Source: Amoebophrya sp. A120
Lineage: Eukaryota; Protista; Dinoflagellata
Direction: 5' to 3'
Assembly: GCA_905178155.1 (NCBI GenBank)
Contig: CAJINV010000015.1
Coordinates: forward strand, 1,336,513-1,400,512
DNA: 64,000 nt
Shown here: piece after piece, positions 36,748 to 64,000 of the stretch
How positions within the stretch are numbered: position 1 is the first letter of the stretch
How the letters are laid out: each line of letters starts with the position of its first letter
Position numbers and translations under genes: made by a program
Notes under the pieces: model-generated
The model's input: only the letters and a program-made list of their open reading frames with translations
What the model was told of the DNA's origin: nothing
The model's database searches: none

Positions 36748-38292
36748 ATGGCGACTTTTGCCGCGGGCGCGGTCCCGGATATGCGCAACGCGCCGCCGGA
36801 CCCTAATGTGCAGCGGAACAAGACCCAGGCGTTGTCCACCCAACTCTCCGACCTGTTCATTGGCACGGGGCACGGGACGACCAAAACGGGAGAAGTTTAC
36901 GAGTTCGATGCTACCACCGAGGAAGACAGCCCGTGGCACTACAAATGGGCCCGGAAATGGTACATCTACCTCGGGTTTCCAGAGCCCGCGCTGCACGTAG
37001 ATCTAGAAATCGTCCGGCTGTACTTTTACTACGAGGAAAAATACGCACGAGAGCTGCTTTTCCCGCCGAAGCAACTTGCCGTGGAAGACAGTACGAAGCC
37101 GCAACCGCAGTTCAACAACTTTAACAACGTCGGTGTTGCGCATTCATCGTCAAAAAAGCAGAAACCGGTGAAGAGAAAAGACAGCTTTATGGAGAGAAGA
37201 CTGGGGACGAAAAGTTGGACGACACCGCAATTAGTCTCAAGAGTGGGAGACTTTTTCATCATCATCTCTATCATCTCAGTTCTCGTGCAAACCCATCCCA
37301 GCACGTTGGGGCACATCAAGCCGTTACATTGGTTGATTATTGACGGCTTCATCGTGGCCTACTTTTCCGTCGAGTTTGTCATGCGGTTTTACGTCTGCAA
37401 CGCGTTCGGGGCGACGAGATACCAATTTATGACGAAGCTGCTCAACGTCTGCGACTTCATGGCAATAGTTCCATATTTCGCGGTATTTTATTAGTGAGGG
37501 CGTTTTTTTTGTGTTTCAGATGCATGACCAATTTTTGCGATTGCTAGAGCTGCCCTGTGCATAATAATTGCAGATTTATTTGCAAAGCTGATGCGTTTTG
37601 TCATGCTGGTTACTTGTGGATGCAGCAATTTGTGAATTCGTCCAAAAAATCTCCCAACATCTACTCCCAAAACAGACTCTCTTCGGCGGCTCCAAGCACC
37701 TGGAAGTCCTGAAAATCTTCCGTATGGCACGGTTAATCCGGCTGCTGATGTCGATGAAGATCGGGCGGTTACTCATCGCGACCTTCCGCGTGTCCGCGAC
37801 GGCGTTGTACATTTTAATCTTCTTCATCATCGTGTCTGGTATACTGCTCGGGGCTCTGGTCTATTCCTTCGAGCGGTTATCCTGTTTCGAACCGGACACC
37901 CGGGGAGCGTTTCGTGATTTTATCACCATCCAGGGCGGGATCACGAGCAATACGCCGCACGGGGACAAGAAGATTCACTGCGCGTACGAATGCGATTCAC
38001 AAACCTTCCACGACCGGCATTTCGTGGACTACTGCTACTACTTGGTGGAAGACAAGGACATGGTGCCCTCAGAGGTCGGTCCGGACAACTTCTACGCCAT
38101 TCCCATGCACACCATCAACTTCCCGTCGATCCGCGCGAGTCTCTGGTTCACGGTGGTGACGAAAGCCACGGTCGGGTTCGGTGACATCGTGCCGGAAACG
38201 ATTGTCGGGAAATCGGTCGGTGGGCTGTTCTGTATGTTGAGCGGGATTTTGGCGATTTCTCTGCCGGTCGCGGTTTTAGGTAACACGTTCCA
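36748..38292 (+). CDS. Kv-type 6TM potassium-channel module (N-terminal part of the fused gene)
   Basis: S2 FIVAYFSVEFVMRF, S3 NVCDFMAIVPYF, S4 LKIFRMARLIRL, pore SLWFTVVTKATVGFGDIVP, S6 GILAISLPVAVLGNTF. Confidence 0.9.
37492..37660. other. Non-canonical intron / degenerate introner between Kv S3 and S4
   Basis: A 169-bp removal joins AVFY|LLPK; weak TIR; contains GCATGAC/GTCATGC. Confidence 0.6.
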
Positions 38293-38554
38293 TATCAAAT
38301 GCAAGAATTTCTGGGGCTGGAAGAGTGCAAGACTTGTCATGCATATTTTGAATGGCCAATGAGGTTTGGGACGCAGATCCTAGCATGACAGATTCTGCGA
38401 GGTCTCCATCATGCCTATCCTGCATAGGAAACGTCTTCTCAACTTGGTCGAAAGTGGACAGCTTTTGGTCATCATGCAACACAGATTTTTGCATGATTCT
38501 GAGTGACCACGGCAAGTTCCACTTTTCCAGCCCAAGACATATTTGCATTTGATA
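38293..38554. mobile_element. TIR introner, family A
   Basis: TSD TTCCA. Confidence 0.9.
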
Positions 38555-38666
38555 TTCCAAGACCTCGCGCAACTCCAAGACGCGAAGGACGGCGCGAGCC
38601 GGAAATTGCCGCCGTTTCGGTTCACGAATAGGCAGGTTTCAGGGTCAGACCAGGCGAGTAGTGTGC

Positions 38667-38930
38667 TATGCATTGCAAATATGTCGGGGAGTTTGGAAGG
38701 ACGCGAACTTGTCATGCTAAGTCTGGATCGTGCAAAAATTTGTGCTGCATGAGTACCAAAAGCTGTCCACTTCTGAACAAGTTTACAGGCAATTTGTCAT
38801 GCGGGATAGGCATGATAGAGACTTAGCAAAACCTGTCATGCTAGGTCCTGCATTCCAGACCTCATGGGACATGGAAAATATGCATGAGAAATTAGCATTC
38901 TTCCAGACCCAGACATATTTGCGCTGCATA
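38667..38930. mobile_element. TIR introner, family A
   Basis: TSD TGTGC. Confidence 0.9.
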
Positions 38931-39359
38931 TGTGCCACCGGTGGACAACACTTCCACCGATCCGAAGGTGTTTGACCCCGGGCGGGATGGCAGTAACCCG
39001 ATGCTGTCCATCGCACCCGGGCAGCAAGTGGAAGAAGTGCCGATGTCAAACGATCTCTACCAATCCGTGTTAGAGGGGGACGGCGGCAGTGAAAACGCGT
39101 TTGGCCCGGACGTGAACAAAAGTTCTAGTTCGGAGGAGCGGGAAAACAACGCCGCGAAAAGCGGAACAATTTCTGCAAAGAAAAACATTGGCGGGTTATT
39201 TCCGCCAGTGCAACAAGCCCAGCAGCAAACCGTCCCGCCCTCCAGTCCAGGAGCAGGAATTTTGAAGCGCCAGGCCACCGCAGAGAAGGACGAGGGCCCG
39301 AGAAAAAAGTCGGTTGCATTCGGGGAGACGAGTTTCCAGCGGTTAGGAACGGGTGGTTT

Positions 39360-39612
39360 TATGGATTGCAAAGATGTCTGGGTCTGGAAAAGTTCAAGGT
39401 TTGTCATGCTAGGCTAGCAAGACTCTTAAGTCTGTCATGCGCGTTACCCCAAGGCCCTACTTTTCTGTGATGCAAAAACGCAGTTTGTCATGCGGAATAG
39501 GCAAGGCTTAGAGGCTCAGAAACTTGTCATGCTGAGCCATCATTTGTGGCCTCCACATTCTAACTCCCTCAGCATTACAAGATTCCAGACCCAGGCATAT
39601 TTGCATTTGATA
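39360..39612. mobile_element. TIR introner, family A
   Basis: TSD GGTTT. Confidence 0.9.
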
Positions 39613-40230
39613 GGTTTACCGGGTTTACCAAACGCGAGTTCCACCGCGACCATCGGCCCGGACGACCCCCGGATGCCGCAGTCTGTTTTTGGCTCGCCGA
39701 GGAAGCAGACCAGCAGCTCGGAATCATCCGAGAACTCCGCCGTAGTCCAGCAAACGTCCGCGCAAAAAATAAAATTCCTGGCGAGGATGCCCTCGGTCGA
39801 GGATTCCGCGGCGAGTTTGGGCTTGTCGCCCATAGAAGCGCAACTCCGCATTTTGAAGTCGCTCGTGCGCCGCGCGTCCCAGACCTCCCTGGACATCCAG
39901 GGGCTGCAGATGCGACGGGAAGAAGTGAAAATTTTACTGCGGATTCAGATCGCTTTACTAGTGAAAACTCTTGTCGACCACTACACGGCGAAGCGGGCTC
40001 GGGTCGAGAGCCGGATCGAGTCGAAGCTGGCGCGGTTGGAAGAAGCGAAGAAAGATTTGAAACTGCCCCCCTCGATCCAGAAACTCGTCCTCTGCGAGGA
40101 CGCCTATGGCGCGATCGGGAAGAAGTCGAAAAAAGTGTTGGTCGTCCCCGGGAGTTCGAAAGAGGATGATTCCGGCTCGCGCAAGGACCCGGTTGGAAAA
40201 CGGTTGATCGGGAGGATTACGCGGTACAGC

Positions 40231-40496
40231 TATCAAATGCAAATATGTCTGGGTCTGGAAGAATGGAAGGTTTGTCATGCACATTTTACATGACTTCTGA
40301 TGCCTGTGATGTTGGCCTAGCATCACAGATTTTTAGAGTTCTTCGTGATGCCTATTTCGCATGAAAGATGACCTCTGCGCGCAGCACAAACTGGTCTCCT
40401 CTTGCTGGTCATGGCAATACCGGTTTATTTTTTAGAACCCAAAGACAGCATCACAAGTTCCAACTCTTCCAGACCCAGACATATTTGCAATGCATA
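40231..40496. mobile_element. TIR introner, family A
   Basis: TSD ACAGC. Confidence 0.9.
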
Positions 40497-43400
40497 ACAG
40501 CCTGCGGTATACGATTATTCCGATCACCACGTACATTTTAACACCAGAGGTGCTCGCCCGGGCGGAAGCGCTAGGAAACATGACGCAGCGGATGCAGGAT
40601 TTGATCCCTTTATCTCTCAACCTCTTCCCGAAGGAATCGAATTTCCGCCGCTACTGCTTCCGAATCGTGACTCTGAAAGTGTTCGAAACCTTCATCATCG
40701 GGGCCATTTTGGGGAACGCGGCGTTGTACTGCATCCAGGACTACAGTACGGACGACAACTGGCAGGCGAGTTTGTTGGTTGCGGGAGAGCCGGTTTTTTT
40801 GCTGATTTTCGTGATCGAGTTCCTGATGAAGATTGTCGCCTACGGTTTCTTCTACGGGAAAAACACGTATTTACGCGACGGCTGGAACTGGCTGGATTTC
40901 ACCGTTATGCATTGCAAATATGTCTGTGTCTGGAAACTTGTGATGCAAGGAAGGGACTAGTGAGCTCACTGTAATGCGCTGCCAAGCATGACAAGTTTTT
41001 TTCCTGCTTCTGAGTTGCGTATTCCGCATGAGAAACTTCGTTTTTGCATGCCGGATGGTAGTTAGGAAGTGGACCGTGTCTCCACCTAGGGGCATCGGCA
41101 GAGGCTAAATCTGTTCTAACGCCCAGGTATTGGCAGAGGCTAAATCTGTTCTAACGCCCACCCGCCAGGAGTTAAATGGTACTACTACTACTACTACTAC
41201 TGCATGACACGGAGGGGGAGCTCTTCGCGGCCATGCAGTACAGAGGTCAGAGTCATGAAAGACTAGCACGACAAATCTCGCAATCCCCCGGACCCAGACA
41301 TATTTGCATTTGATAACGGTTGTGGTTTCCGGGCTGGTGGATTTCGTGGCAACCATGATCATGACGGGCGACGACTATCAAAAGTAAAAACGTCCCCACC
41401 TCCCCATAGTCAAGTTGGTAAATCTGCAACAGAAATCTCCCAGCGTTGGGAGGTACGCATGACAAGTTATCATCTGCAGTGTAGTGCTGTTTAGCAAGGA
41501 CACCCGCATCACAAAGACGCCCGCTCATCCAGTTGACAGCATTACAAATCCCAGAACTACACGACTACACTTTCCTCTCTTGCGGATGTGCATTACAGAT
41601 TTTTTTGTAGATGCAGGGACGTTTTTAAATAGGATAACGACGACAACAGCTTCATCGCCGTTTTGCGTACCTTCCGTGTGTTGCGACCACTGCGAACTTT
41701 GTCGACCATGCCAGGGTTAAAAGCGTTGGTGGTCACGGTGTTTTCCTCTCTCCCGAAGCTCGGTTCCGCGGTGGCATATCCAGAGTGAAAACGTCTCCAC
41801 CCCAGAGTTGTCATGCAAATGTGCAAGCGAAAAATATTTCTCATGCGCAGGCCCATGGGGATCATTTTCCAGTCGTGTTTCGGAACTTGTGATGCTCCAA
41901 TCACAATGATACGCTAGATCTGTGATGCTGCTGAACTTGCTAAACAGGACTATTCTACGAGGCCAAACTTGTCATGCGCAACAGCCAAAGCTTGCTGATT
42001 TGTCTAGCAGACTTACCATCTTGCCTCTGGTGTGGGAACGTTTTTTCACAGCATATGGCGTTGTGTGTCTTCATCAACCTGATCTTCTCCTTGATCGGCA
42101 TGACGTTTTTCGGCGGGAGGTTGAATAGAAGGTGTAGGTTGTCGCAATCCCCGATAGAAATTTTGCTTCCCCCGACGTACAGTGACGAATTGGTGCGACT
42201 GTGGAACAACCACATTACTTCCACTTCTGGTGGGACGAGTAACGACTTACACGGGGCGATGCTGGAACTCGGGGACGACACCGGCACGAACAAACAGCAC
42301 TACCCGCCGGCGTATAAGGATTGGATTTCCCCGTACAATGTGTCCGCGCCTTATTTTGCGAATCCGGAATTGCACCCTTGGTTCAACTATCAAATCAATG
42401 CAAAAATGTCTGGGTCTGGAACAGTGCAAGTCTGTCATGCTTGTCTGGCATGACTCGAGAATCTGTGTAGCATAGGCACGAAAGAGCCCTCTTAACTGTC
42501 ATGCGAAAAGGCAGCTTGCCATGCGGAATACATAAGACATGGCAGCCACAAAATTTGTCATGCATAGCTGCGTCTTGCGGCACATCTACTATTCCCTTTT
42601 AGCATTACAAGTTTCCAGACCCAGACATATTCGCAATCCATATCAACCAAAACTACGAACCAGCGGTCGGGAACAACGCGCACTGGCCGGGTATCCTTCA
42701 GAACAGTACACCCAGAGCAGCAACAAAAAAGTGAACTTCTGTTGCTGTTTCTGTGTCACCACTTTGCTTTTTGATGCGGATCTGCAACAGGGGCGGTTCT
42801 CTGTCACGTGTGCATAATGGAGATCGTAATGCTGACAAGCATGACAAAGGTGTCTTAAAAGTTTGTCATGCTGAATAGGCGACAAGGGGGTGTCTGTGAC
42901 ATGGAAAACAGCATGACAAGGATATTTTTGTCTGGTGCACTACTAGGTGTACATTTCTGTAGGATACCGGGGTACACGGACAAAGTAATGTACCAAACAC
43001 TGCAGCAATTTCAAGCCGCTGTCTCCTGCACGACGTTTTGTGTCAACATGCAGGGCTTTTGGACGCAGGATGACAAAACGCAGTACTACGTGAAATTCAA
43101 GAATTATTTAGCGGGGAATCCTAGATCCGGGTTGAGCGAATTGGTCGAGACTTACAACTCCGCAAATCCGGCGAATTTGCTGCGAAAACTGGCGGAGAAC
43201 GGGTTTGACGCAGGAGTCACTTTCGACAGCAGCGGGGGAATGGTGTTGGAAGAGAAAGGAAAGAAAGAAGAAACAAGCAGTTCTTATTTGCAGCAGTCAC
43301 AGCAGCAGCTGCCCTCTGCGAAGTCGAGGAGGACAAAGAAACAGGGGAGGACGCATTTCAGGTCGAAAGCGAATAATGCGGTGAATAGTAGAAAATTGTC

Positions 43401-46400
43401 GCACTCGTCAACGAGGTCTTCTTTGCCATCAAGTGTAAAATCAAAACTCAAACGCGTGCTCACGCCGATTCAACAACTAGCGAAATTGAAAGAGGAGAAA
43501 AAGCGGAAACTAACGACAACCATCACCCATGATTCTTCTGGGTCGTTGCTCGTTACAGCGGCCCCTGCCGCGTATTACCGGTCTGCGACTTTAACCGAGG
43601 AGCAGTATGAGCTCGCTTTCCGGTTGTTTCTGAAAAGGATTTACGACCGGTACGTCAGAAGAACTTTCGGGAAGCAGAAGCAGGATTTCGAAGACAATTT
43701 AAAGTTCGTCGTGTGGCCGATCGACAACGAGCAAAGCCGGCTGTGCGGGGCCAGGTACAGCTGTGAATCCTACAAATCCGAAGACGATATGGAGGAGGAG
43801 GATTTCGAAACATTAAGGGTTTTAGGGGAAAAAACCCTAACAGTCTCCTACTCGGACAACAACCAACCGGAGTTAGCCACTAGTTGCGGCGGTAGCTACT
43901 GGGACGACACGGACCAGGTATCCAGTGCAAAAGTATCGTACTCGTACTAATGGCAGTCATGCAAAACAAATTTCTTGTTCAAGCTAAAGCAGCATGGGAA
44001 ATTCCATTTGTCATGCTGAGCTAATTTGTATTGCAATACTACGAGTGCGATACTTTTGCAATGCATACCAGGGGCCGTATCGCAAGAAGAAAACGGATAA
44101 CACGGGGTGGGGCTTTATCCTGAGCAAAAACGTCCCCGCCCCATAATCAAGTTGGTAAATCTGCAACACAAATCTCCAGGCTTTGGAAGTTGTGCATGAC
44201 AGGTTTCCATCTGCAGTGTACTGGTGGTTAGCAAGGGAAGCTGCATGAGAAAGCCACTTTCCCATCCTATTTACAGCATAACAAATGCCAGAACACGACT
44301 GGAAATGCCTCTCATGGAGATGCGCGTATACAAATGTTTCTGTCATTGCGCATTTGCATGACAGCTCTGGGGTGGGGACATTTTAACTTCGGATAGAGTT
44401 GGGCGTGAAGGGGAACGTGTACGACTTGCCCGAGGAGATTAACTTACCCGATTTACAGATGGACGAGAATTCCTTTGACAACATCTTCGTTGCGCTCCTA
44501 ACCTGTTTCGCGACCATGACGTTAGAGGGTTGGACCATCACCATGTACATGGTGCAGGATATCACACAGAAAAAAGGAGGCAGATCACATTATTTGTAAT
44601 GCAAAAACAAACGCACAGAAATGTTTGTCATGGGCGGCCCCATAGCGTGCTGCTTAGGGTATGCAAAACAGATCATTTTGTGTATTTATTTTTGCATTAC
44701 AAATACGACCTGCCTACTTTTTTCTGTGTGATACAGGACGGCGTCGCACCGGAGGGCGGGGCGGTGTTTTTCTTGCTCCTAATCGCGATCGGAAACTTCT
44801 TTTTGCTCAACATCACGCTGGCCATTGTGTTGAACAATTTCCTGGAGTCGAGTGAGCAGCAACAGAAGAAGGCGGAAAGGGACGAGTTGAAACGGCAGGA
44901 AAAGGAAGAAGACCCAGCTGCAGGTAAGTTCGAACAGCAGCGTAAGAAGCGTTTTTTTTTTGTTTACGTTGCGCAAGTAGTATCGTCGAAATTATTATCA
45001 CGCGCAAGATACAATGCTGGCCACACCTACAGCACATTCAGCTGCTGGACCATCGATGCATTTTATGTAAGAATGAGAATCAAAAAAAGCGCGGTCAAAT
45101 TACGTGACGCATAAAACAGACAATGATACCCAAGCGGAACAAAGGCGGCCCGCTGGAGGTATCAAAAAATGACGAGAGTCGTAGTTAGAAAAACATGCGC
45201 TCCTTTCTTGCAGGAGGCATGTGACAGGTGTTGACCTCTCGTGACTGAATGCAGCAAGAAAAGTCGTGAGGTAGATGTGGGCCGCATAATATCTCGCAGC
45301 TACAGATTTGGCAAATGATGATTTTTTTGAAACATGTTGCTAGAACAGTGAAACTCAATTTCTATTTTTCCACGATCGTTCTTCCACACTTCTTCACCCA
45401 GCTCCCGAGAAGAAGGAGAAAAAGAAGAAGAAGGGCGACAGCTTCGCCGCGGCAGTCCAGGCGGCGCAAACCAAAGCGGCCATCGAGAGTCACAAGAAGG
45501 CGCCGAAAGCGGACCGCTTCAAAATGTTCGGCTTCAGCGTCGGGATGCCCCCGTGGGTGGGCGCATCGCGACTGCAGAAAAAGAATAAGAATCCCGCTGC
45601 CAGCCCGAAAGCCACCCCGTACGGCGGGGGATCTTCACCGACGGCGGCGGTGATATCAAGAAGAAAATTTCCCAACCCCATATCAAAACGAAGTTTCTGA
45701 TGCTGGATTTGCGTACGCAAATCAGATTTGTCCTGCTGGAGAGGACTGCAGGCCTATCTCCAGACTGAATAGAGATGTTTTGGGCTAGGCGCCGAGCATG
45801 GCAAACGTCTAGGCTGTAGGGCGAGCAGCATCACAAACCGCCCGCAGAATGCGGCGGGGCCTGTGGGGTTGCGTTCTTGCAAGACAGAGACGATTCGTGG
45901 TCGCAAATCAGCACTGCAAATCTTCTGAGACATACCTTTTCGATATGGGGAGGGGGGAATTTTCCTTTTGATAAGTGACGCAGCAAAGTCAGCTCGTAGA
46001 GTCCCTCATCGCCGTGAACCTCGACACGCCGCAGCAGCAGCAGGTAATATGGATTGCTAATATAATCAGCCTGGGTCTGGAAGAGTGAAGCTCGTCATGC
46101 GAAGTCAACATGACAAAAAATCTGCGTTGTCCGAACATTAAAAGCCGCCCACTTGTTGCGAAGTAGAAAAAAGCTGGATTTCTCATGCGAGACAAGCATC
46201 AAAAAGGTCTCGCAAAATGTGTGAAGATGCTTGTGTTGTCGTGTGTATTGCAGATGACCATGTGCGTGGAAATCCGCGAGTAGATGCATTGCAAATCTTA
46301 ATCTTGCATATTTTCTTGTTCCAGACCCAGATACATTTGCATTCGATAGCTAAACGGCAGGTCCAATTCTCGCGACAACTTCAAGAACACACAGCCGAGG

Positions 46401-49400: not shown

Positions 49401-52400
49401 CTCCGTCGCAGAGCTTGTCACCGCCGCGTCCGGTGGCGGATCGCAGCTCACCTCTCTCCGTGGTCTCCGGTTGCTACGTGTTTTCCGGTTGGCGAGAAAG
49501 TGGAAGTCGTTAGCTCTGCTCATGTGGTCGATGTACCGTTCGTTCATCCAGCTCGGGAACTTCACGCTCCTCCTCTGCCTCATGATCGCAGTGTTCGCTC
49601 TCATGGGTCAAACGTTCTTCGCCGCGACCTTAGTTTTCGATCCGGACACGGGGTATTGGCTGGAGGAATGCTCGGGGGTTGGGAATTGGTCCGACCCGGA
49701 GTGTGTCGAAGTTTGCCCGGAGATCAACGACTGCCGAGAACGGTTAAATTTCGACACTTTTCTCTGGGCGGTGACAACGATTTTGGTGATGCTAACGGGC
49801 GAAGATTGGCCGTCGATCATGTTCGCGGGCATGAAAACCAGCGGGCTGGCCACGATCTACTTCTTGCTGGTTGTGGGGGTCGGGTCGTTTTTGATTCTCA
49901 ACCTTTTCGTCGCGATTTTGATGTCTTCCTTCGAAGAGCAGTCGGAAAAGAATAGGACTTTAGTTGAGGCGTTGAAGATGCAGAAAATCGAGCAGGAGGG
50001 GGTCAGGATCGCAAAAGCGCAGAGGAAGCAGGCGATGGCCGGGTCTCCCTCGGAGCACCTGAAACTCATCTGGAACGCGTTGAACAAGCGGGAGATGCTG
50101 GCAATTTCGAACGAGATCGCATCCAGGGAGAACAGCAAGGAGATTGAGGATACCACCCCGCAGGACAGTCCGCAGGATGGTACCACGAACCCGAACTCTG
50201 TTCTCGCTAAGAAGAAGCAGCAAAAGGCCGCGCCTATCATGATCAGAGACGACTTGAACATTCTCCAGGCGAGTTTCATGTGGGTCTCCCTGGCGACGAA
50301 ACGAACCTCCGGCGCGATCGACAAGCGCGTGCAGAAGTTGCTGCGGCGGGTGAGGCGGAGATTCATGATTTTCAAAAGGATTTCATTAGGGTCAAAATCC
50401 TTCTTCATCTTCCCCTTCAAGGGGATCGATGAGATCATGATGCAGATCGAAAAAGTTCGGGAGGCGGACTCGTCGGAGTTGAAGAACATCATGAAGGAAC
50501 AGATGATGATTTCGCAGCATGAAATGGACGAAATGGAGAAGCTATGAAGTGCAAAAGTATTTGCATGCAGCAATCTGCATGACAAGACACGATGCTTTTC
50601 TGCATTTAGCATGGGAAGTTTCGTGTTCCTACCTACAGTGCAAGTCTGTCATGCAGTTCTGTGCAAAACAAAATGCTTTTGCAGTGCCATAACGGCTTCC
50701 GTGGTACAAGAAGTACTACAAAAAGTACCTGGCCTGGATTCCGGAAATGTTCAAGCGCGCGGAGAAGATCGAGTACGAAGACGACGAGCTGTATGGAAGC
50801 GTCAGAGTTGAAATCGTCAAAGTTGAAATAATTTGTAATGCATAAAATGCATGGCCCGAGGCACGTGCGTTGCAGAGCAGGCAAGTGAGGCCGATTGTAA
50901 GCCTGTTTGGGTTTACAGCTCGAGCTGCTAAAGTAGCAAGAGAAAATCACTCTTCTTTGCCTAAACAGCATGACAAACTGGATTTAGGGACCACCGAAAT
51001 TTGTCATGCGCCACTTAGAAACTGGGTTCCAACTGGCATCCATTTTATGCATGACAAATTATTTCAACTATGCATGACATCTGCGGTGAGGTGCCCTTAC
51101 AGGTTGTGTAGTGGTTTCGGTCGGTTTAGCATGACAAATTATTTCAACTTTGTCGATTTCAACTCTGACACATCCATAAGCTGTCCCTCGGTTCCACGGC
51201 TTCCAGCGAGCACCGCTCGCCCTTCACAAAAACGGATGTTAGCTTTCGAGAACGGATGCGGCGGGTGATGAAGCACCCGAAGTTCGACCAGGTGATCTTA
51301 CTTTGTATCGCGACGTATGCATTCGAAATATGTATAGGTCTGGAAGAATGCAAGTCTGTCATGCTTGGCCGACAAGACAGGAAAGTCTGTCATGCTTGGT
51401 GCGCTACAGTGCCACTTGTTTGTCATGCAAAAAGGCCATTTGTTTTTCGTAATGCGGTGCACGCTAGACATAGCCGCTCAGAAATTTGTCATGCGTGGCC
51501 CCCTAATACAGGCTGCGTATCATTAGGACATTAGCATCACAAGTTTTCAGACCCAGACATATTTGCAATGCATACGACGAGCTCCTTGCTGATGATCGTC
51601 AACACGCCGTTATCCGACCCGCGCGCAGAGCCGGAAAACACGTTTTACTTCGTGATGGACTGGTTTTTCGGCATCATCTTCACCGCGGAGATGTTCACAA
51701 AGATGATTGCGATGGGGGTTCTGGTGAACAACAACCCGGCGCTATCCAAGAAAAAAACTGTGTTAGTGTAAGTCTTTTGGGAAAACAGCATCACAAGTTT
51801 GTCTGCCGTGACAGGGAAAACTTATTATGCGCAGATAGGAAGGGAAAACACAAAGGAAGCCAGCCGATCGCGCATGTCGAGCATGATTAGTGTAACCGTT
51901 TTGCACTTTCTGCGTCACAGATTGACACTTACACAGTTTTTTTCTTGCATATGCGCCCGAGCAGTTTGCGGAGCTGCAGGAGGATTTGGAGAGACAGAAG
52001 TTAGAGGAGGAGGAGCGGCAGATAAAAGCGGAGGAAGACCGGATCAAAGAGGAGAAGGAGCGACAAAAAGAGCAGGAGAAATTCGAATCAGAACGCGCGA
52101 AGATGGACAAATCAAAAGTCGCTTCCGACGCAACGCTCGCCGCGGCTCGCGGGCAGGCGATTACGCCGATCGACACCTCCGGGAGTTCGCCGAGGACAAA
52201 TTCCCGGGAATCTAGTGGAAGCGCAGGGAGGATATCGAAAGGAAAAATCCCCCCTCCCCATATCAAAAACGAAACTTCTGATGCTGGATTTGTGTACACA
52301 AATCCGAGCTGTCTTACTGGACAGCACTGCAGGCCTAGGCCAAGTGTGAGTAGAGAGGTTTTGCGGCCTAGGCACTGAGGATGAAAAACATCCGCGCTGT

Positions 52401-55400
52401 AGGCCCAACAGCATGACAAACCGCCTGCAAAATGCGGCGGGGCCTGCGGAGTTGCCTTCTTGCAAGACAGACACGATTTGTGACCACAAATCAGCATCAG
52501 AAATTTCCGAATATATACCTTTTCAGAATGGGGAGGGGAGATTTTTCATTTTGATCGAGGAAGCCGGGTGGGTATGAAGCTGCGATCCGGGAGAAACAGG
52601 CAATTAACATTGCGGTCGGGAATCCAAACGTGCACGGGTCGGACAAGCTCGGGTTAGGGAAGGTCCCCATCCCCCATAGTGTGATTTCTGATTCAGACCT
52701 GCAGATCTCCGGCGGCTCGGGATCCGGCAGGTCTCCGGCGGCTCCAGCGTCGGGGTCGGACACGGTTGTAGCGGGGTTGAAGCCGAAAACCGTAGAAGCT
52801 GTTGTTCCGTCGAAAAACGGCAAAGTGGTTGCTCCGAACGCCGGGAAAAAGAAGAAAGGAGGCGGCGTGGAGGTCGACGACATGGAGGCGCAGATGGAAA
52901 ACGCGGGGAAGGGGGACGCAACTGCGGGTGAAGAGGAGCCACCCGCATCTGCCGGGAGCACCACGTCATCCCTCGCAGCAATTCTCTACGATACGGAGTA
53001 CCAGCAGCCCTACATGTCGGACCCGTGGAACATGCTCGATTTCATAGTCGTCTGTGTCGCGTGGATCGAGTTAACACAAGTCTTGGAGGGCGGTTCGTTT
53101 CTGAAAGTCCTCCGTCTGTTCCGTACCCTCCGGCCGTTGCGAATGATCAGCAGGAATCCGAACTTGAAATTAGTGGTCACAACTTTGTTCAAGTCCTTTC
53201 CGCAACTAGTGACTCTCTGCGTCTTCGGCGGTTTCATTCTATTGCTCTTCGGGGTTTTTGCCACTTCTTATCTCAAAGGCGCTCTGTCCGAGTGCAAGGG
53301 CGAGGACGGTGCGGATCCCATGGAGTTCTATAACTCCACGTGCCGGGACGAGTTTTGCAACGATCAGAGGCTCGGTTTCTGCGTCGACACGTACAATTAC
53401 GATTTTGTCACGTACGCGACCTACGCGGAGATCGAAGCAGACGATCCGTATTTACACTTGAAGTACTCCCTTTTCCCAAACAGCACCGCGTCGGCCGCCG
53501 CGGCGCCGTCAGAACTTTCGTTAGTCGATTTCCGGTCCGACGCAAATTACTGGTCGAGTAATCGCATGTGCTACGAGCAACTACGGTACAGCTTCTTCGA
53601 GCCGAAATCGGAGTTGACCTCAACCGTCACATCTACCGTCCCGCAGAACAACCAGCCGGCGATTACGACGTTACAAACCGCGGATCTGCTGTACCAGCCC
53701 GACGACCCAACAAGTAAAGCGTACCAGCCGACAACGTATAACGAGTCTTACTGGCAACTCACCTACCCCGACCCGGCGATCAGGGAAACCAGGATCCGCG
53801 AAGAGATACAAAGAAGGTACCGGCCGCAGTTGCGCGGGAGTAAAGATACACCGCTATGTATCGCAAGGAAAAATCCCCCCTCCCCATATTGAAGAGGTAG
53901 GTTTTCGAAAATTTGTGTTGCTGATTTGAGGTCACAAATCACGTGTGTGTTGCAAGAAGACAAGGGCAGCAGCTTCCGTCCCATTATGGAGCCGGTTTGT
54001 CATGCTGTTGAGCCAACATCGCGGACGCTTTTCATGCTAAGCGCCTAAGTCAAAGCCTCCACACTCAGGCTTGATATGGGTCTGCAGTCCTCTCCAGCAA
54101 GACAAATGCGATTTGTGTACTCAAATACAGCAACACAAATTTCGCTTTCGATATGGGGAGGGGGGATTTTTCCTTTCAATACTATGTGTCGTGAATTGTG
54201 CGGAAGTCGGGAACAGCCACCCGTTTTGCGTGGCGTCGGAGGTTATCAAATGTAAAAGTGTCTGGGTCTGGAAGAATGCAACTTGTCATGCTAGATCTGA
54301 AGCATGCAAAAATCTGTGTTGCATGATTACCAAAAGTCGTCCAGTTTTGACCAAGTCGCGAGGAAGTTGCTCGTGCAGGATAGGCATGAGAGAGATCGCG
54401 CAGAATCTGTCATGCTGGGTCCTGCATTCCAGACCTCATGGGTCATGGGAAAGCTGCATGACAAATCGCGCACTCTTCCATACCCAGACATTTTCACATT
54501 TGATAGAGGTGAAGCAGGACGAACAAACCGGTGTGTGGTCGTTTGATCAAAACATCTGGGGGCACCGGGTGATCCCGTGTACCAGCTGCTACACGAATTT
54601 CTGCGAGAACACCGGGGTCGAAACCGAATCGGAAGAGCACTGCAAGTACCAGTGCGACGGGCCGAGCCAGTACAATTTGTACTGTACCGACGGGGCGTGT
54701 GACGACCCGAATTCCGCACAGTGTTTGACGTGTAAGAACGAATGTATAGCGCAGTGTAAGTGCCCACAGGTGTGCTTACCACATCTAAAAGACGCGACAA
54801 GCTGCATCTTGGCGAAGGGCAGGTGGTGGAGAGTGGTGCCCGGGATATCAAGTGTAAAAATGTCTGGGTCTGGAAAAATGCCAGACTTGTCATGCGGATT
54901 TTACATGACCCATGATGCCTGTAATGGATAACCTGGCATCACAGATTCGTAGCGGGCTTTCTGATGCCTATCCCGCATGAGAAATGCCCTCCCCATGTAG
55001 CACAAACTGGACCCCTCTTGCTGATCATGCAATACAGATTTTTTTAGAATGCAGAGACAGCATCACAAGTTGCAATCTTCCAGACCCAGACATTTTTACA
55101 TTTGATACGTGATGGGGTTTGACAACATTTTGAAAGCGGCGTTCACGTTGTATCAAAAGGAAAAATCCCCCCTCCCCATATCAAAACTGAAATCTGTGAT
55201 GCAGATTTGTTGTCACAAATCAGCTTTGTCATGCTACACGGGAAAAGATGCGGACTGTAGTGCTGGGTGGCGTGGGGGAGCCTTGCATCTTCAGCATGAT
55301 AGGAGGCAGCTGAGAGTGGGAAACAGCATGACAAATTGCCTGCAAACGAGACCACGACTGCGGCTCTTGGCCTTCTAGCATGACAAGTCGATTTGGTACC

Positions 55401-58400
55401 TCAAATCCTGCATCACAGATTTCCATTTCGATATGGGGAGGGGGGATTTTTCCGTTTGATACGTTGTTCCAAGTGATCACAACGGAGGGGTGGGTCGTGA
55501 TTATGCTGGCGGTGGTCGACCAGGACGGCATCTACGCGGACCCGATTCGGGACAACATCGAGCTGTGGGTTACCCCGAGTACAAACGTCCCCCCCCCCCC
55601 CCCCGAGTCAAGATGGGAAATCTGCTAGACAAATCCATGAAGCTTTGGTTGTTTCGCATGACAGGTTTGGGCTCGTAGTGTATTTCCGTTAAGCTACGGC
55701 AGCAGCATCACAGATCTAGCATCTTATGCTCATTGGAGCAACACAAATTCCACAACACAACTAGAAAATTGTTTCTCATGGAGCTCCGCATGAGAAACGT
55801 TTTAGGCGTGCAGATTCGCATGACAAATCTGGGGTGGGGACGTTTTTACGGAGGATCTAGGTCATCTTCTTCTGGATCTACTCCTTGGTCGGGTACTTTT
55901 TCCTTATCAATTGCAAATATGTCTGGGTCTGGAAGGTTGCAGCTTGTGATGCTGCTCTTGGATTCTAAAAGACTTTGTATTGCATGACTAGCAAGAGGGG
56001 GCGGGTTTGTGCTATTTGGAGAGGGCATTTCTCGTCATGCGGTAGAGGTATCACAAAGCCTTCTGAAAATCTGTGATGCTACGGCATGCATCACAGACAT
56101 CATGGCTCATGGAAAATATGCATGACAAATCTAGAAATCTTCCAGACCCAGACATTTTTGCTTTTGATGTTCCTCGCGAACGTCGTAATTGGCGTGATTA
56201 TTGACAACTTCAACCAGATGAAACGCGACGCGGAAGCAGACACATCAGAACAAAAGGTTCTCTCCGAGGCGCAGCAGCGGTGGGTGCAGTGCCAGAAGGT
56301 TTTCTACGCGACCAGGAGTTTCTTTCTGATCACCAACGTGGAGTCACTACCAGCCGGGCAACGAGGGTTGTTCTTCTTCGTCGCGTCGAAAAAGTTCGAG
56401 TCTTTCATTATGTCCTGTATTGTGCTCAACATCTTCGCGATGGCGTTCCGCGTGCACCCAGAGCCGACGAACAAGAATACTCTAGCGTACGACTTGCACA
56501 TCGTGATCGAGCCGATCAATTTGTTCTGTTTGATCGTCTTCAACGTGGAGTTTATTTTGAAGTTAATCGCGTACAGGACGGGGTATTTCTCCGATATGTG
56601 GAACAAATTCGATTTTTCCTGTGTGGTCTCGTCCAACATCGGGTACATATTGGAACTCCTCAACGTCGGCGACACCGGCTCCCTCTCCATCATCCGCATG
56701 TTCAGGATCATCCGGTTGTTCCGCCTAGTCCGCTTCTTATCCGGTCTGAACCAGCTCTCCGGTGCGTTTCTACTTTCCATCCCCAAGTTGGGGAACGTTT
56801 CCGCCATTTTGGGGTTGGTTTTGCTCATCTTCGCGTTGCTAGGGATGAACCTTTTTTCCCCGTTCTTGATGTTGGACTCCTTCTATCAAATGTAAAAATG
56901 TCTGGGTCTGGAAGAATCCGAAGTTTGTTATGCTGCTTTTGCATGACACAGAACGTCGGTCATGGAAGCCCTAGCATCACAGATTTTTAGAGGCCTTCCT
57001 GATGCCTATTCCGCATGACAAATGCCCTCCACGCGTAGCACAAACCGGACTCCTCTTGCTGGTCATGCAACACAGAATTTTTTAGAGTCCAAAGTTGGCA
57101 TCACAAGTTCCAACCTTCCAGACCCAGACATTTTTGCAATCCATACCTTCGCTGCGTACGGCCCGTCTGCGAATTTTCTCACTTTCTGGGACAGCATGCT
57201 AACGTTACTGCGGTGCATGACGGGCGAAGCGTGGAACAGTATCATGGCGGATTTGGCTATCCACAGTAAATCTACCGTGCGCGTACAAATGCTGTTTCCG
57301 CATGACAAAACTCGCATTCAATCTTAGTCAGCATGACAAGTTGGACACTCCAACTTAGGGAAATTTGTCATGCATTTTGTACATGTACGGAAAATTTGTA
57401 TTGCATATTAGCAACCGAACAGTTCGAAACGCAGTCGGTGCTGAACCAGCCGTGCGTGCAGGAGATGGCAATTACGAAGGACAATTTTTCCTTCCTCAAC
57501 GCCGAGGGGTATTTGGAAAAACCGATCCAGTGCGGCAACACCGAAACGGCGTACGTGTTTTTCGTCATGTTCATCGTCTTTGTCTTCTTCATTGTTTTGA
57601 ACCTGTTCATCGCGGTGATTTTCGAGGGCTTCGAGGAGTCCCGGCAGCTGCAAGTCGGGAACATTTTGCAACTCGCAATGGACCTGTGGTCGGAATACGA
57701 TCCGAAGTACGAATATCCACAGGAAATTTATTCCCGTACACGTACGAAAGCAGTCTCTGCATGACAAAACTTGCCTTCAATCCTAGTCCAGCATAACAAG
57801 TTGGACTCTGCAACAAGGTAGCGAAGTTTGCCATGCATTTTGTACATCATGTGCAGGAAATTTACATTGCATAACGAGCTGATTCTACCGGTGGATCACG
57901 CAATCACGTTCGTCGGGGAGGTTTTGGAAAAATCCGGGTTAGATACGGACGAGGACAGTATTCTGATTCAAAACGTCCCCACCCCAGAGTTGTCATGCCA
58001 ATCTGCATGCCAAAAAATTTTCCCATGCGGAGCCACATGAGAGCCATTTTCTCGTCGTGTTTTGGAATTTGTGATGCTGGAATCAGCATGATGCCCTAGA
58101 TCTGTGATGCTTCGGAACTAGCTAAACAGGATTACACTACGAGGACAAACTTGTCATGCGAAACAACCAAAGGTGGCTGATTTGTCTAGCGGATTCCCAT
58201 CTTGACTTTGGTGTGGGGACGTTTTTACTCAGGATAGACAGCAACTTAACCCTAGCGGAACGCCGCGTGAAGATGATGCGGTCCTACGCGCTATCCTATG
58301 TAAAAACGATCCCACCCCAGAGTTGTCATGCAAATCTGCATGTTAAAACTGCTTCTCATGCGGAGCCCCATGAGAGGCATTTTTTATTCGTGTTTCGCAA

Positions 58401-60367
58401 TTTGTCATGCTCCAATCGGCATGATGTGCTAGATCTGTGATGCTGCTGAACTAGCTAAACAGGATTACACTATGAGGCGAAATTTGTCATGCGGACCTCC
58501 GAAAACTGTGGGACTTGTGTTGCAGACTTCCCATCTTGACTATGGTGTGGGGATGTTTTTACATATGATACGCATTGCAAGTTACGCCTGCTGGGGACAC
58601 GCATTTCCTCTGGTGCTGCCAGGCGATATTGCGGAAGACGATTGTGCAAAATTCGCCGGAGTTGGCGCGGCAGTTGGAGGAGTTAGACACCGACACAAGC
58701 GGATATGCATTGCAAAAATGCCTGGGTCTGGAAACCTGTGATGGTAAAATGTGCATGATGAAAACACTTCCGAATGCAGTCCGGCATGACAACTTCCTAA
58801 AACGCTTTCTCATAGGCAATCCGCATGAGAAACTGCGTTTTTGCATGACAAAAGAGCTGCGACTTTTGTTGGTCATGCAATACAGATTTTCTAGCTAGGT
58901 ATGGAAAGCTAGCATTACAAGTTCCAACCTTCCAGACCCAGACACTTTTACTATCCATAGTGGGTCGCTCATGACGAAACAAGTCATCGAAATGCGGGAG
59001 CAACGAATCGCACAAACCGAGTCCACCGCCACGGAATTCGTGGCGAAGAAGAAGGTTTTCGGTCTCGAGCGCTACGACGCCAGGCTCTCCATCGACATCA
59101 TTATCCGCGGTATCCGGAAAGCGCGGGTCCGGCTGAGAAAACGGAAGCACGACCAGTGGCAGGCGGCGCTGCTGCGGTTGTTCACGAATATGGACGGACA
59201 CGTGAAGAAGTGCGGATTGCTCGCTACCCGCACGATGTACAGCAAAACCGCGAACCGCCTACGGTACATCATCCTGCAGGACGCGAAGGTGTTCCAGGGG
59301 ATCCCCACCGCGACGGTGATGGACGCCGTGCTGATGAGCTACGGAATCGACCGCTACAAATCCCTCGAAGACAAAACAGCGAACCCGAAACTGAACCCGT
59401 CCGCGTTGCGAAAATGCCAATCTTTCGTCGGGGGCAACATCAGCCTGTTCTACTTTTACAACTGGCTCGACAAACGGGTGGATCCCCCGCCAGACCCGGG
59501 TTTGCGGCGGATCACCGGGCCGCCACTAGAGGGGCGGGTGAACGCGAGAAGGGGGGACAGCGACGAGCGGAAGGTGCTGGAGACGTTGGACTTCGAAGAC
59601 CCAGACCTGTTATTGTCCGCCGAGCAATACCTGAACCGGTACGACCGGTTTGGTATCCACTGCAAATATGTCTGGGTGTGGAAGAGCGAAAACTTATCAT
59701 GCAGGTTTTCCATGACCCGTGAGGTCTGGAATGCGAGACCTAGCATGACAGACTCAATGAGGTCTTTGTCATGTCTATCCTGCATGAGAAACTCCCTCCC
59801 AACTTGGTTGACAGCGGACAGCTTTTGGCACTCATGCAACACAGATGTCTGCATGATTCGGATTGAGCATGACAAGTTCCAACCTTCCAGACCCAGACAT
59901 ATTTGCAATGCATATTTGGCAGGAGAAGAAGGGCCAGTCACGACGGCAGGAAAAGTCGCGCCGGTGGGCCGAAACACGACGTTATCGAAGTGGATACTAG
60001 CGAGAGATTGGACGCAGGTACTTACTCTTATTAAAAAGACGTTGTTCTTCTTCACATTGGAAATGTTTTGTGATCATGTTTTGTGGTGCTTTTGTACAGC
60101 AATGAATCACATAGAATGTTTGTCATGCAAATCAATATTGATAAAAACACTAACACAGGCCTACGTCGCGGAGGCGCCCATTCCGACGAGGCTTCGAGTA
60201 GCGACTTCTACCAAGACGACAAATACCGAAGAAGACTTATGAGAAGGGATGTTGAACTAGTGCGCAGTAGCATTTCACAGATGCGACCGCCACATCTACA
60301 GGTTGTAGTGTTGCAAAGGCATGAGGCAGTTTTTGAGTACTGCAGCCGGAGGTGGAGCAGCAATTAG
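40497..60367 (+). CDS. Four-repeat voltage-gated Ca2+ channel alpha-1-like module (EEEE filter), many exons
   Basis: S4 segments LRTFRVLRPLRTL, LRGLRLLRVFRLAR, LRLFRTLRPLRMISR and IRMFRIIRLFRLVR; pore loops TLEGW, TGEDW, TTEGW and TGEAW; EF-hand-like LWSEYDP and IQ-like IIIRGIRKAR after repeat IV. The 3' end is approximate. Confidence 0.92.
40906..41315. mobile_element. TIR introner, family A, enlarged by an internal insert/duplication
   Basis: TSD ACCGT/ACGGT; internal GGCAGAGGCTAAATCTGTTCTAACGCCCA twice and a (TAC)n tract. Confidence 0.85.
41376..41636. mobile_element. TIR introner, family C (TATCCTGAGTAAAAAYGTCCCCAC)
   Basis: TSD ACGAC. Confidence 0.85.
41777..42055. mobile_element. TIR introner, family C
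   Basis: TSD TGGCA/TGGCG. Confidence 0.85.
42388..42642. mobile_element. TIR introner, family A
   Basis: TSD TCAAC. Confidence 0.88.
42692..42966. mobile_element. TIR introner, singleton family (TATCCTWCAGAA..GTACACC)
   Basis: TSD CCGGG. Confidence 0.85.
43919..44067. mobile_element. TIR introner, family B
   Basis: TSD CCAGG. Confidence 0.88.
44116..44395. mobile_element. TIR introner, family C
   Basis: TIRs; degenerate TSD GGCTT/GAGTT. Confidence 0.82.
44560..44733. mobile_element. TIR introner, singleton family (TATCACACAGAAAAAAG)
   Basis: TSD CAGGA; removal restores YMVQD|GV after pore I. Confidence 0.88.
44923..45401 (+). other. Canonical GT-AG intron in the channel I-II linker
   Basis: CAG|GTAAGT donor and pyrimidine-rich CACCCAG acceptor. 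Confidence 0.65.
45654..45973. mobile_element. TIR introner, family F (TATCAAAAGGAAAATCCCCCCTCCCCATAT)
   Basis: TSD GGTGA/AGTGA. Confidence 0.88.
46048..46348. mobile_element. TIR introner, family A (degenerate)
   Basis: TSD GGTAA/GCTAA. Confidence 0.8.
46438..46655. mobile_element. TIR introner, singleton family (TATGACAGTGCACAACCCCC)
   Basis: TIR AGTGCACAACCCCCCCT / AGGGGGAGTTGTGCACT; flanking CAGA repeat. Confidence 0.75.
47491..47773. mobile_element. TIR introner, family C
   Basis: Near-perfect TIR; TSD CCCGT/CCTGT. Confidence 0.9.
47818..48076. mobile_element. TIR introner, family A
   Basis: TSD GGACG. Confidence 0.9.
48307..48542. mobile_element. TIR introner, singleton family (TATGGCGTTCTCAA.TGTTACA)
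   Basis: Long TIR; TSD GAAAA. Confidence 0.88.
48668..48979. mobile_element. TIR introner, family F
   Basis: TSD GCAGA. Confidence 0.9.
49250..49380. mobile_element. Degenerate short introner in repeat II S3
   Basis: Removal joins IFDG|FIVL; contains TGTCATGC twice. Confidence 0.65.
50543..50691. mobile_element. Short TIR introner (family B-like)
   Basis: TATGAAGTGCAAAAGTATTT / AAATGCTTTTGCAGTGCCATA. Confidence 0.75.
50792..51178. mobile_element. TIR introner, singleton family (TATGGA..GTCAGAGTTGAAATCG)
   Basis: ~45-bp TIR; TSD AGCTG. Confidence 0.88.
51316..51574. mobile_element. TIR introner, family A
   Basis: TSD CGACG. Confidence 0.88.
51743..51951. mobile_element. TIR introner, singleton family (TATSCAAGAAAAAAACTGTGT)
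   Basis: TSD GGCGC/TGCGC. Confidence 0.85.
52233..52556. mobile_element. TIR introner, family F
   Basis: TSD GAGGA. Confidence 0.9.
53859..54181. mobile_element. TIR introner, family F
   Basis: TSD CTATG. Confidence 0.9.
54244..54505. mobile_element. TIR introner, family A
   Basis: TSD GAGGT. Confidence 0.9.
54846..55107. mobile_element. TIR introner, family A
   Basis: TSD CGGGA/CGTGA. Confidence 0.9.
55151..55461. mobile_element. TIR introner, family F
   Basis: TSD CGTTG; splits the pore III helix AFTL|FQVITTEGW. Confidence 0.9.
55571..55857. mobile_element. TIR introner, family C
   Basis: TSD TGGGT/TAGGT. Confidence 0.82.
55905..56169. mobile_element. TIR introner, family A
   Basis: TSD TTCCT. 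Confidence 0.88.
56884..57145. mobile_element. TIR introner, family A
   Basis: TSD CCTTC. Confidence 0.9.
57258..57407. mobile_element. TIR introner, family H (TATCCACAG.AAAT...CGTAC)
   Basis: TSD TTGGC/TTAGC. Confidence 0.8.
57714..57873. mobile_element. TIR introner, family H
   Basis: TSD ACGAA/ACGAG; similar to 57258-57407. Confidence 0.8.
57959..58236. mobile_element. TIR introner, family C
   Basis: TSD GACAG. Confidence 0.88.
58292..58570. mobile_element. TIR introner, family C
   Basis: Body similar to 57959-58236; degenerate TSD. Confidence 0.85.
58704..58959. mobile_element. TIR introner, family A
   Basis: TIRs; degenerate TSD. Confidence 0.85.
59654..59914. mobile_element. TIR introner, family A
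   Basis: TSD TTTGG. Confidence 0.9.
60018..60158 (+). other. Probable canonical GT-AG intron near the channel 3' end
   Basis: CAG|GTACTT ... CTAACACAG|; AT-rich; keeps the post-introner frame open to 60367. Confidence 0.6.
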
Positions 60368-63300: not shown

Positions 63301-64000
63301 CAGAAACTGCTGATCTGCATCACTTTTCAGGTGATGCAGGGGGGGTTGGGCCCGCAATCTGCTGATGCCAAAATTTGATGCTGACCGCATCAGAAACTGC
63401 TGATCTGCATCACTTTTCAAGTTTTGACTTGATGCAGCCAGGTCCGTAGCCTACGGCCGTAGGCTACGGAAATGGCACCAAGACTTGATGCAGACAGCAC
63501 GGTATGCTGCTGATCTGCATCAAGTTTTGACTTGATGCAGCCGGGTCCGTAGGCTACGGGCCGTAGCCTACGGCCNNNNNNNNNNNNNNNNNNNNNNNNN
63601 NNNNNNNNNNNNNNNNNNNNNNNNNNNNNNNNNNNNNNNNNNNNNNNNNNNNNNNNNNNNNNNNNNNNNNGGGGGGGGGGTGGGCCCGCAATCTGCGGAT
63701 GCCAAAATTGGATGCAGACCGCATCAGAAACTGCTGATCTGCGTCACTTTTCAAGTGATGCAGATAGGGGGGTGGGTCCGCAATCTGGGGATGCCAAAAT
63801 TTGATGCAGACCGCATGGGAAACTGCTGATCTGCATTACTTTTCAGGTGATGCAGGGCAGGGGGGTGGGCCCGCAATCTGCGGATGCCAAAATTTGATGC
63901 AGACCGCATCAGAAACTGCTGATCTGCGTCACTTTTCAAGTGATGCAGATAGGGGGGTGGGTCCGCAATCTGGGGATGCCAAAATTTGATGCAGACCGCA
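60365..64000. repeat. 185-bp tandem satellite (dimer of ~92-bp subunits), spanning an assembly gap at 63576-63670
   Basis: Identical ORFs recur every 185 bp; unit GGGGGTGGGCCCGCAATCTG(C/G)GGATGCCAAAATTTGATGCAGACCGCAT...TGCATCACTTTTCA(A/G)GTGATGCA. Confidence 0.97.

Follow-up and report, generated by a model that had tools for sequence, protein, structure and literature searches.

Ion channels of differing selectivity are usually encoded by separate genes, and much cellular machinery goes into placing Ca2+ and K+ channels next to one another. In animals, BK channels with Cav1 or Cav2, and Kv4 channels with Cav3, are brought together in non-covalent complexes of separate gene products, held by protein contacts or auxiliary subunits. 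In a six-transmembrane (6TM) K+ channel unit both termini are cytoplasmic, and four such units are needed to make a pore, whereas a single four-domain channel already forms a complete one. Tandems of two voltage-gated K+ (Kv) repeats occur in dinoflagellates (PMC7576140), and four-domain channels are known from protists (PMC5824947). Here we describe a gene of Amoebophrya sp. A120 that combines the two kinds of channel. Within a 64,000-nucleotide (nt) stretch of contig CAJINV010000015.1 (positions 1,336,513 to 1,400,512 of the forward strand; the whole stretch is hereafter the window, and coordinates without a contig name refer to it), a Kv-type K+ module is fused in frame to a four-repeat channel with a four-glutamate (EEEE) filter, in one gene.

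The product of this gene resembles each of these systems in part. It has in common with the protist four-domain channels (PMC5824947) four homologous 6TM repeats, charged S4 segments, an EEEE filter, extended extracellular S5-P loops (repeats I and III), and a III-IV linker that is short and Nav-like. It differs from them in having a fifth 6TM unit, of K+ type, ahead of these repeats in one polypeptide, and it probably lies outside the animal Cav1, Cav2, and Cav3 subfamilies. With the Kv tandems (PMC7576140) it shares a Shaker-like 6TM unit and concatenation within the SAR (stramenopile, alveolate, and rhizarian) protists, but in the tandems like units are repeated and jointly form one K+ pore, whereas here the Kv module is joined to a partner channel of other predicted selectivity with a pore of its own. 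The Kv module also departs from the tandems in lacking a T1 domain and in having a Cys-rich turret of ~90 residues between S5 and P. Like the BK-Cav and Kv4-Cav3 complexes, the predicted protein would co-localize voltage-gated Ca2+ entry with a repolarizing K+ path, but its link is a peptide bond and its ratio is set by the gene.

The gene occupies positions 36748 to 60367 on the + strand as a single coding sequence (CDS) of 12,747 nt, distributed over 42 exons and 41 introns and encoding 4,248 residues. The length of the whole 42-exon model is divisible by three and its single stop codon lies at 60365-60367, where the first-pass annotation of this DNA, made from the letters alone, had ended the gene. 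The ATG at 36748 is preceded by an in-frame stop 9 nt upstream. The parts of the gene are as follows.

36599..36747, + strand: 5' untranslated region (UTR); the spliced RNA contig begins at 36599
36748..38281, + strand: Kv-type 6TM module, residues 1-447, with S1-S6 at residues 162-447 and a GT..AG intron, 37482-37674, seen in RNA
38168..38185, + strand: K+ selectivity filter TVGFGD, aligned to TLGYGD of Kv4.2
38282..40678, + strand: cytoplasmic linker of 444 residues (residues 448-891), exons 3-6, rich in S, L, A, P, and K
40679..44829, + strand: repeat I, residues 892-1567, with an extracellular S5-P loop of ~460 residues and TLEGW at 44519-44533; Ion_trans
44830..49040, + strand: I-II cytoplasmic loop of ~590 residues, stop-free after introner removal; no Pfam match
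49041..49920, + strand: repeat II, residues 2158-2405, with TGEDW at 49795-49809; Ion_trans, E=1.6e-34
51292..56202, + strand: repeat III, residues 2681-3468, with a long S2-S3 insertion, a Cys-rich S5-P loop, and TTEGW at 55479-55493; Ion_trans
56401..57620, + strand: repeat IV, residues 3535-3800, preceded by a 66-residue III-IV linker and with TGEAW at 57220-57234; Ion_trans
57621..60367, + strand: C-terminal tail of ~448 residues and stop; no Pfam domain on the tail exons

An exon-wise Pfam scan placed Ion_trans on the Kv module and on each of repeats I to IV, the five matches that the first-pass annotation had anticipated. Over the whole protein there are five S4-like basic ladders, and the hydrophobic segments cluster in five modules. 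Database searches, family assignments, and fold predictions were made on single exons, and the joined reading was used for frame, hydropathy, motifs, and a local tree.

Introner elements of Amoebophrya have terminal inverted repeats (TIRs), with direct repeats of 3 to 5 nt that overlap the exon/intron boundary, and non-canonical ends predominate among them (PMC7789003). Those of the window gene are the same in kind, including the presence of repeated families. We built the model by removing the element plus 5 bp at ~37 introners, a rule that restores the frame at every one of them, together with four ordinary introns. The ordinary introns 44924-45401, 49249-49384, and 60018-60158 were placed by their GT..AG ends and by frame; for the first of these, five candidate AG acceptors all leave the frame open, and the one with a pyrimidine tract was chosen. 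Intron 57258-57412 has an alternative with GT..AG ends, 57266-57411, and both keep the frame. RNA supports the first 7 introns, and the remaining 34 follow from the target-site duplication (TSD) rule, GT..AG ends, and frame continuity.

The RNA evidence comes from assembled contigs and reads of four runs, compared over positions 36300 to 41500. A single contig in run X1, 14,569 nt long and with a depth of 169, has zero mismatches over the compared part (100% identical) and spans the Kv module, the linker, and repeat I with exact excision of the introners. Its joints, together with the introners that they remove, are these.

Joint 37481>37675: 193 letters skipped, GT..AG; X1 contig
38288..38554, + strand: introner 1, a 262-nt element at 38293-38554 plus TSD TTCCA, supported by RNA joint and TIR/TSD; joint 38287>38555, 267 letters skipped, X1 contig, 5 ambiguous letters
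38662..38930, + strand: introner 2, TSD TGTGC, supported by RNA joint and TIR/TSD; joint 38661>38931, 269 letters skipped, X1 contig, 5 ambiguous letters
39355..39612, + strand: introner 3, RNA joint in X1 and X4; joint 39354>39613, 258 letters skipped, X1 and X4, 5 ambiguous letters
40226..40496, + strand: introner 4, TSD ACAGC, supported by RNA joint and TIR/TSD; joint 40225>40497, 271 letters skipped, X1 contig, 5 ambiguous letters
Joint 40903>41319: 415 letters skipped; X1 contig

The match of the contig breaks off at 41375 and resumes at 41642, which defines a seventh intron, 41376-41641; together with 40904-41318, this gives repeat I two introns seen in RNA. The 5 letters that fit on either side of an introner joint correspond to the 5-bp TSD. 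Four of the six joints recur independently in X4, another sample from the study that produced X1, on short contigs of its own, and the depth of X4 is alike over the Kv module, the linker, and repeat I (2.5-6.5).

These joints coincide exactly with the four introner removals (267, 269, 258, and 271 letters) that had been proposed in the first-pass annotation, and they uphold its reading of one stop-free frame from S6 of the Kv module into S1 of repeat I. Spliced at the RNA joints, the 966 codons that begin at ATG 36748 contain no stop, and they give the same junction peptides (GNTF/QDLAQ, SSV/PPVDN, GTGG/LPGLP, and ITRYS/LRYTIIP, with the slash at the joint); the true junctions bring no stop between the modules. 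The probability that ~444 linker codons would all be open by chance is (61/64)^444, or ~6e-10.

The spliced form dominates the depth of X1 (169, versus 3-16 in two bins that consist mainly of unique intron sequence), and its share of sampled words, 0.64, is near the exonic share of the stretch, ~0.68 as reckoned from the joints; runs of the X1 type therefore fit cDNA. Runs X5 and X6, of unstated type, contain 0.76-0.83 of the sampled words. At the 5' end of the contig we found no AG acceptor directly upstream of 36599, and no DinoSL-like sequence was present within the 64-kb window.

A six-frame Ion_trans search of the genome recovered a second locus with five domains, a paralogue on contig C7 (loci L001-L003), in which C7:4350269-4362094 on the - strand is an uninterrupted open reading frame (ORF) of 3,942 codons. 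Along this ORF lie TMTTVGYGD at about residue 503, a linker of >1,000 residues, and then TLEGW, TGENW, and TTESW, with repeat IV in the next ORF; a stretch of 3,031 residues runs without a stop, and Pfam matches the K+ pore and Ion_trans in four stretches. Within this genome its Kv pore is the nearest relative of the Kv pore in the window. No introner-like inverted repeats were found inside the C7 ORF, and the paralogue is largely intron-free, whereas the window gene has 41 introns. Because the Kv module and repeats I to III lie in a single genomic ORF, the paralogue documents an in-frame fusion at the level of DNA without any assumption about splicing.

The same architecture extends beyond Amoebophrya. 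HMMER, run exhaustively with the Kv exon, led to P0011, a Hematodinium transcript ORF of 1,325 residues with a Kv module followed by repeats I and II, which is the best full-length Kv match with a named source outside Amoebophrya (P0002, of unknown origin, scored higher). It clusters with P0151 (Hematodinium, transcriptome shotgun assembly prefix GEMP01), a complete ORF of 2,390 residues with five Ion_trans domains and an N-terminal Ion_trans_2. Region searches limited to long proteins added further members of this architecture from Ansanella granifera (P0154), Symbiodinium necroappetens (P0225, deposited as an "unnamed protein product"), a EukProt transcriptome (P0153), and JGI, ENA, and Logan assemblies (P0152, P0223, P0224, P0226, and P0228-P0230). 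These searches place five Ion_trans domains in one protein in several dinoflagellate genera, a check that the first-pass annotation had proposed.

The window protein aligns collinearly with P0151 through each of the five repeats, repeat I corresponding to residues 566-1026 of P0151 and repeat III to residues 1407-1823. Repeats II and IV of the window score 133-187 bits against family members and at most 113 bits against unfused four-domain channels; the gap between family members and unfused channels is smaller for repeats I and III. The 4 full-length proteins that were aligned all read TTVGYGD at the K+ filter, and TTVGYG is present in 12/12 members scanned, followed by D in 10 and by E in 2. 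The ring Glu of repeats I to III is kept wherever these repeats were matched, and that of repeat IV was seen in 7 members and is invariant in the 4 aligned. A profile search with the 4 full-length proteins returned mostly ordinary four-domain channels, and the tree of the Kv module, with no resolution, long Amoebophrya branches, and probable short fragments nested among the fusions, supports no claim of a single origin. Defined by an N-terminal K+ pore and four subsequent Ion_trans repeats in one open frame, each half being closest to that of other members, the fusions form a conserved dinoflagellate family that is unnamed in public protein sets, and the window protein fits this definition. 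The fusion read in the first-pass annotation is therefore real, but it is not a peculiarity of this locus, given the paralogue and the other dinoflagellates.

P0011 and P0151 are 99% identical, but P0011, although marked as complete, stops short of repeat III and has a brief C-terminal tail of its own. P0011 may represent an alternative or unspliced isoform consisting of the Kv module plus half a channel.

Some of the data on transcripts and database entries weigh against a single five-repeat product. The RNA label of the runs that hold spliced contigs is a guess, and the X1 contig leaves room for shorter transcripts. Two raw RNA-seq runs of 2026 under the same species label, X8 and X9, have zero reads on 36300-41500 and so provide no test; they may derive from a different strain under one label or from libraries in which the organism is absent. 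The contig exceeds the 5' UTR plus CDS by 1,673 nt, an excess that may be a 3' UTR entering the downstream satellite or downstream introners retained in the contig. Finally, Kv-only and channel-only entries exist in the databases (P0001, P0012, P0018, P0231, and P0232), which are either fragments or real isoforms. Two adjacent genes with separate products, joined by read-through, mis-assembly, or a wrong intron model, would account for a gene model such as that of the Amoebophrya sp. AT5.2 orthologue P0001 (g17210.t1), which holds the Kv part only, and for contigs that fall short of proving a single transcript. Against such a pair of genes stand the RNA-defined read without a stop, the paralogue fused within an uninterrupted genomic ORF, and the complete five-domain ORFs in independent transcriptomes of several genera. 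The end of P0001, moreover, looks like that of a gene model meeting an intron: the protein is 444 residues long, stops 27 residues after S6, and departs from the window sequence 17 residues downstream of the common GNTFQDLA, with an unrelated tail of ten residues. P0001 was probably cut short by an intron during gene prediction. We consider separate genes to be highly improbable. The first-pass reading of a Kv module that runs into an EEEE channel with no intergenic gap is borne out by the spliced contig, the full model, the paralogue ORF, and the five-domain orthologues.

Downstream of the gene, a tandem satellite occupies 60384-63419 and resumes at 63675-64000, beginning 17 nt after the stop codon. 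Its unit is 92 bp (185 bp is also read), in ~33 copies that are 92-98% alike.

The Kv module itself is recognizable from end to end. Its first exon matches Ion_trans at 24.6 bits and its second matches Ion_trans at 52.6 bits and Ion_trans_2 at 40.8 bits; six hydrophobic segments fall within residues 162-447, and the S4 ladder KIFRMARLIR has a basic residue at every third position (KIFRMARLIRLLMSMKIGR). The structural matches of the pore are Kv4, Kv1, and Kv2, and the S6 motif LPVAV aligns to LPVPV of Kv4.2, as in a Shaker-like S6. The turret of ~90 residues between S5 and the pore helix is rich in cysteines that are invariant in the orthologues. Outside this genome, the Kv exon is matched best by a protein of Amoebophrya sp. 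AT5.2 (76% identity). By these features the module is a Kv-like 6TM K+ channel unit; lacking a T1 domain, it is not a member of Kv1-4.

The remaining four repeats have their S4 ladders at residues 994, 2252, 3016, and 3633, and their pore loops TLEGW, TGEDW, TTEGW, and TGEAW bear out the EEEE filter read in the first-pass annotation. The name "Cav" that it gave to this part stands in the sense of the filter but does not clearly carry over to the affiliation of the protein. The best solved relatives of repeat II are Cav2.2, Cav2.1, and Cav2.3, but the III-IV linker with repeat IV is matched best by Nav structures (E ~1e-58), and the closest relatives are protist channels, in whose clade the four-domain part belongs. 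Because of the match of the III-IV linker and repeat IV to Nav structures, we infer that "Cav" describes the filter and not the subfamily, with Ca2+ permeability predicted from the filter. Neither of the Pfam families GPHH and IQ was found on the tail exons scanned. The I-II loop, the turret of repeat I, and the S2-S3 insertion of repeat III are far longer than in relatives and contain no recognized domain.

Repeat II also differs between the two Amoebophrya paralogues. In the window it reads TGEDW, with an Asp after the ring Glu as in Cav2.2 and animal Cav1/2, versus TGENW in the paralogue and in all other family members. In one report, neutralizing the position after the ring Glu of repeat II turned a Cav3 channel Na+-permeable (PMC10120453). 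Taken with that report, the difference suggests that the two paralogues may differ in Ca2+/Na+ selectivity, which we regard as a lead and not as a result.

We hypothesize that this architecture is used to place two kinds of pore at one spot. Since a 6TM unit begins and ends in the cytoplasm and no part of the linker resembles a membrane segment, the Kv and four-domain modules would lie side by side in one membrane. A single Kv module cannot form a K+ pore, so four chains would join via their Kv modules into one K+ pore, each chain bringing a Ca2+-permeable pseudo-tetramer attached by a flexible tether, and the unit would be hard-wired as one K+ pore to four Ca2+ pores. Depolarization would then open inward Ca2+ and outward K+ paths at one location and in a set ratio, and brief Ca2+ transients or action potentials could be shaped without separate targeting. 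As the probable arrangement we favor a tetramer built through the Kv modules, to which four Ca2+-permeable pores would be tethered. A wider proposal, to which we hold only tentatively, is that the conserved dinoflagellate proteins are dual-pore polypeptides in which a central K+ pore and four Ca2+-permeable pores could constitute a 1:4 nanodomain of excitation and repolarization.

Several points also count against the assembly that we favor. Tetramerization, conduction, and selectivity are all predictions from sequence. No recognized tetramerization domain was found; T1 (BTB_2, PF02214) in particular was found neither on exon 1 nor on 7 orthologues scanned. The lack of a dedicated tetramerization domain, the presence of two fusion paralogues, and other Kv-like loci in the genome that could provide partners would all suit an accessory Kv module, which might pair with free Kv-like subunits or with the module of the paralogue, or serve mainly as an appendage of the Ca2+ channel for oligomerization, targeting, or voltage sensing. 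However, TTVGYG and the gate residues of S6 are kept from Syndiniales to Symbiodinium, and the window protein keeps TVGFGD and a charged S4; such conservation of filter, S6, and S4 argues for a conducting K+ pore rather than a relic, and an accessory role seems to us distinctly unlikely.

The linker bears on how tightly the two modules of the favored tetramer would be coupled. Between residues 447 and 884 there is no hydrophobic segment, and no Pfam match was found in the linker. An AlphaFold single-sequence model of its largest exon begins with 38 disordered residues and contains one helix of 47 residues (predicted local distance difference test scores of 81-92). We detected no similarity of the linker to the Hematodinium linker or to the family profile, and its length varies ~10-fold across the family: the tether is ~130-230 residues in most members, 444 here, and >1,000 in the paralogue, and the distance from the K+ filter to repeat I is 552 residues here versus 260-362 in other members. 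This lack of conservation, together with the variable length, argues against rigid functional coupling and so also weighs against the favored arrangement. We considered a conserved tetramerizing coiled coil in the linker and dropped the idea, as there is no linker homology and only the 47-residue helix remains.

A long, low-complexity, unconserved, and length-variable linker is also what would be expected of a spacer in a polyprotein, a chain fused for co-expression and then cut in the linker into an independent Kv subunit and a four-domain channel. Some dinoflagellate proteins are indeed encoded as polyproteins that are later cleaved, and the Kv-only and channel-only entries could be read in the same way. 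The linkers of aligned orthologues show no conserved cleavage motif, however, and 1:1 translation would yield one Kv tetramer per four channels, an odd ratio if the products separate. The short entries fall inside fusion clades of the Kv tree and are fragment-like, and the polyprotein precedents known to us are soluble or plastid-targeted repeats of one protein, not two multi-pass channels. Cleavage into separate channels is, in our view, unlikely, and uncleaved chains that assemble through their Kv modules remain our preferred reading.

The introners of this gene deserve a description of their own. Self-comparison, together with a scan for inverted termini that are flanked by duplications, assigned ~37 introners in this one CDS to at least five families, and all of these families have TAT...ATA termini and 5-bp duplications. 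The TIR and 5-bp TSD were identified for at least 20 elements. By size, the families are as follows.

~260 nt: introner family, TATCAAATGCAAATATGTCTGGGTCTGGAA
~311-324 nt: introner family, TATCAAAAGGAAAAATCCCCCCTCCCC
~278-283 nt: introner family, TATCCTGAGTAAAAACGTCCCCACCCC
149-160 nt: two small introner families

Relative to the Amoebophrya norm for introners, a single CDS with ~37 of them from at least five families is an extreme case. The 5-bp duplication rule was precise enough to rebuild the 42-exon, 4,248-codon frame from sequence alone.

We found no description of a fusion between a Kv module and a four-domain channel in the papers searched, which included the surveys PMC5824947 and PMC7576140 and a review of Nav/Cav evolution; the "Consensus channelome of dinoflagellates" (Algae 2021) lay outside the scope of this search. 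Both modules and the introners are of known kinds, and the heterotypic 1+4 architecture is, as far as we found, apparently undescribed in any organism. The AT5.2 gene model, which appears cut after the Kv module, is a warning for annotation, and surveys that split channels into 6TM units would miss the fusion altogether. The orthologues of 2,300-2,400 residues, such as a Symbiodinium protein of 2,321, are of a size feasible for heterologous expression, and the architecture is a possible template for engineered coupled channels. The fusion appears to have been retained ever since Syndiniales (Amoebophrya and Hematodinium) and core dinoflagellates (Symbiodinium and Ansanella) separated, which implies selection for fixed proximity or ratio of the two conductances. 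The family thus offers a testable model for channel coupling and excitability in a major lineage of plankton, symbionts, and parasites.

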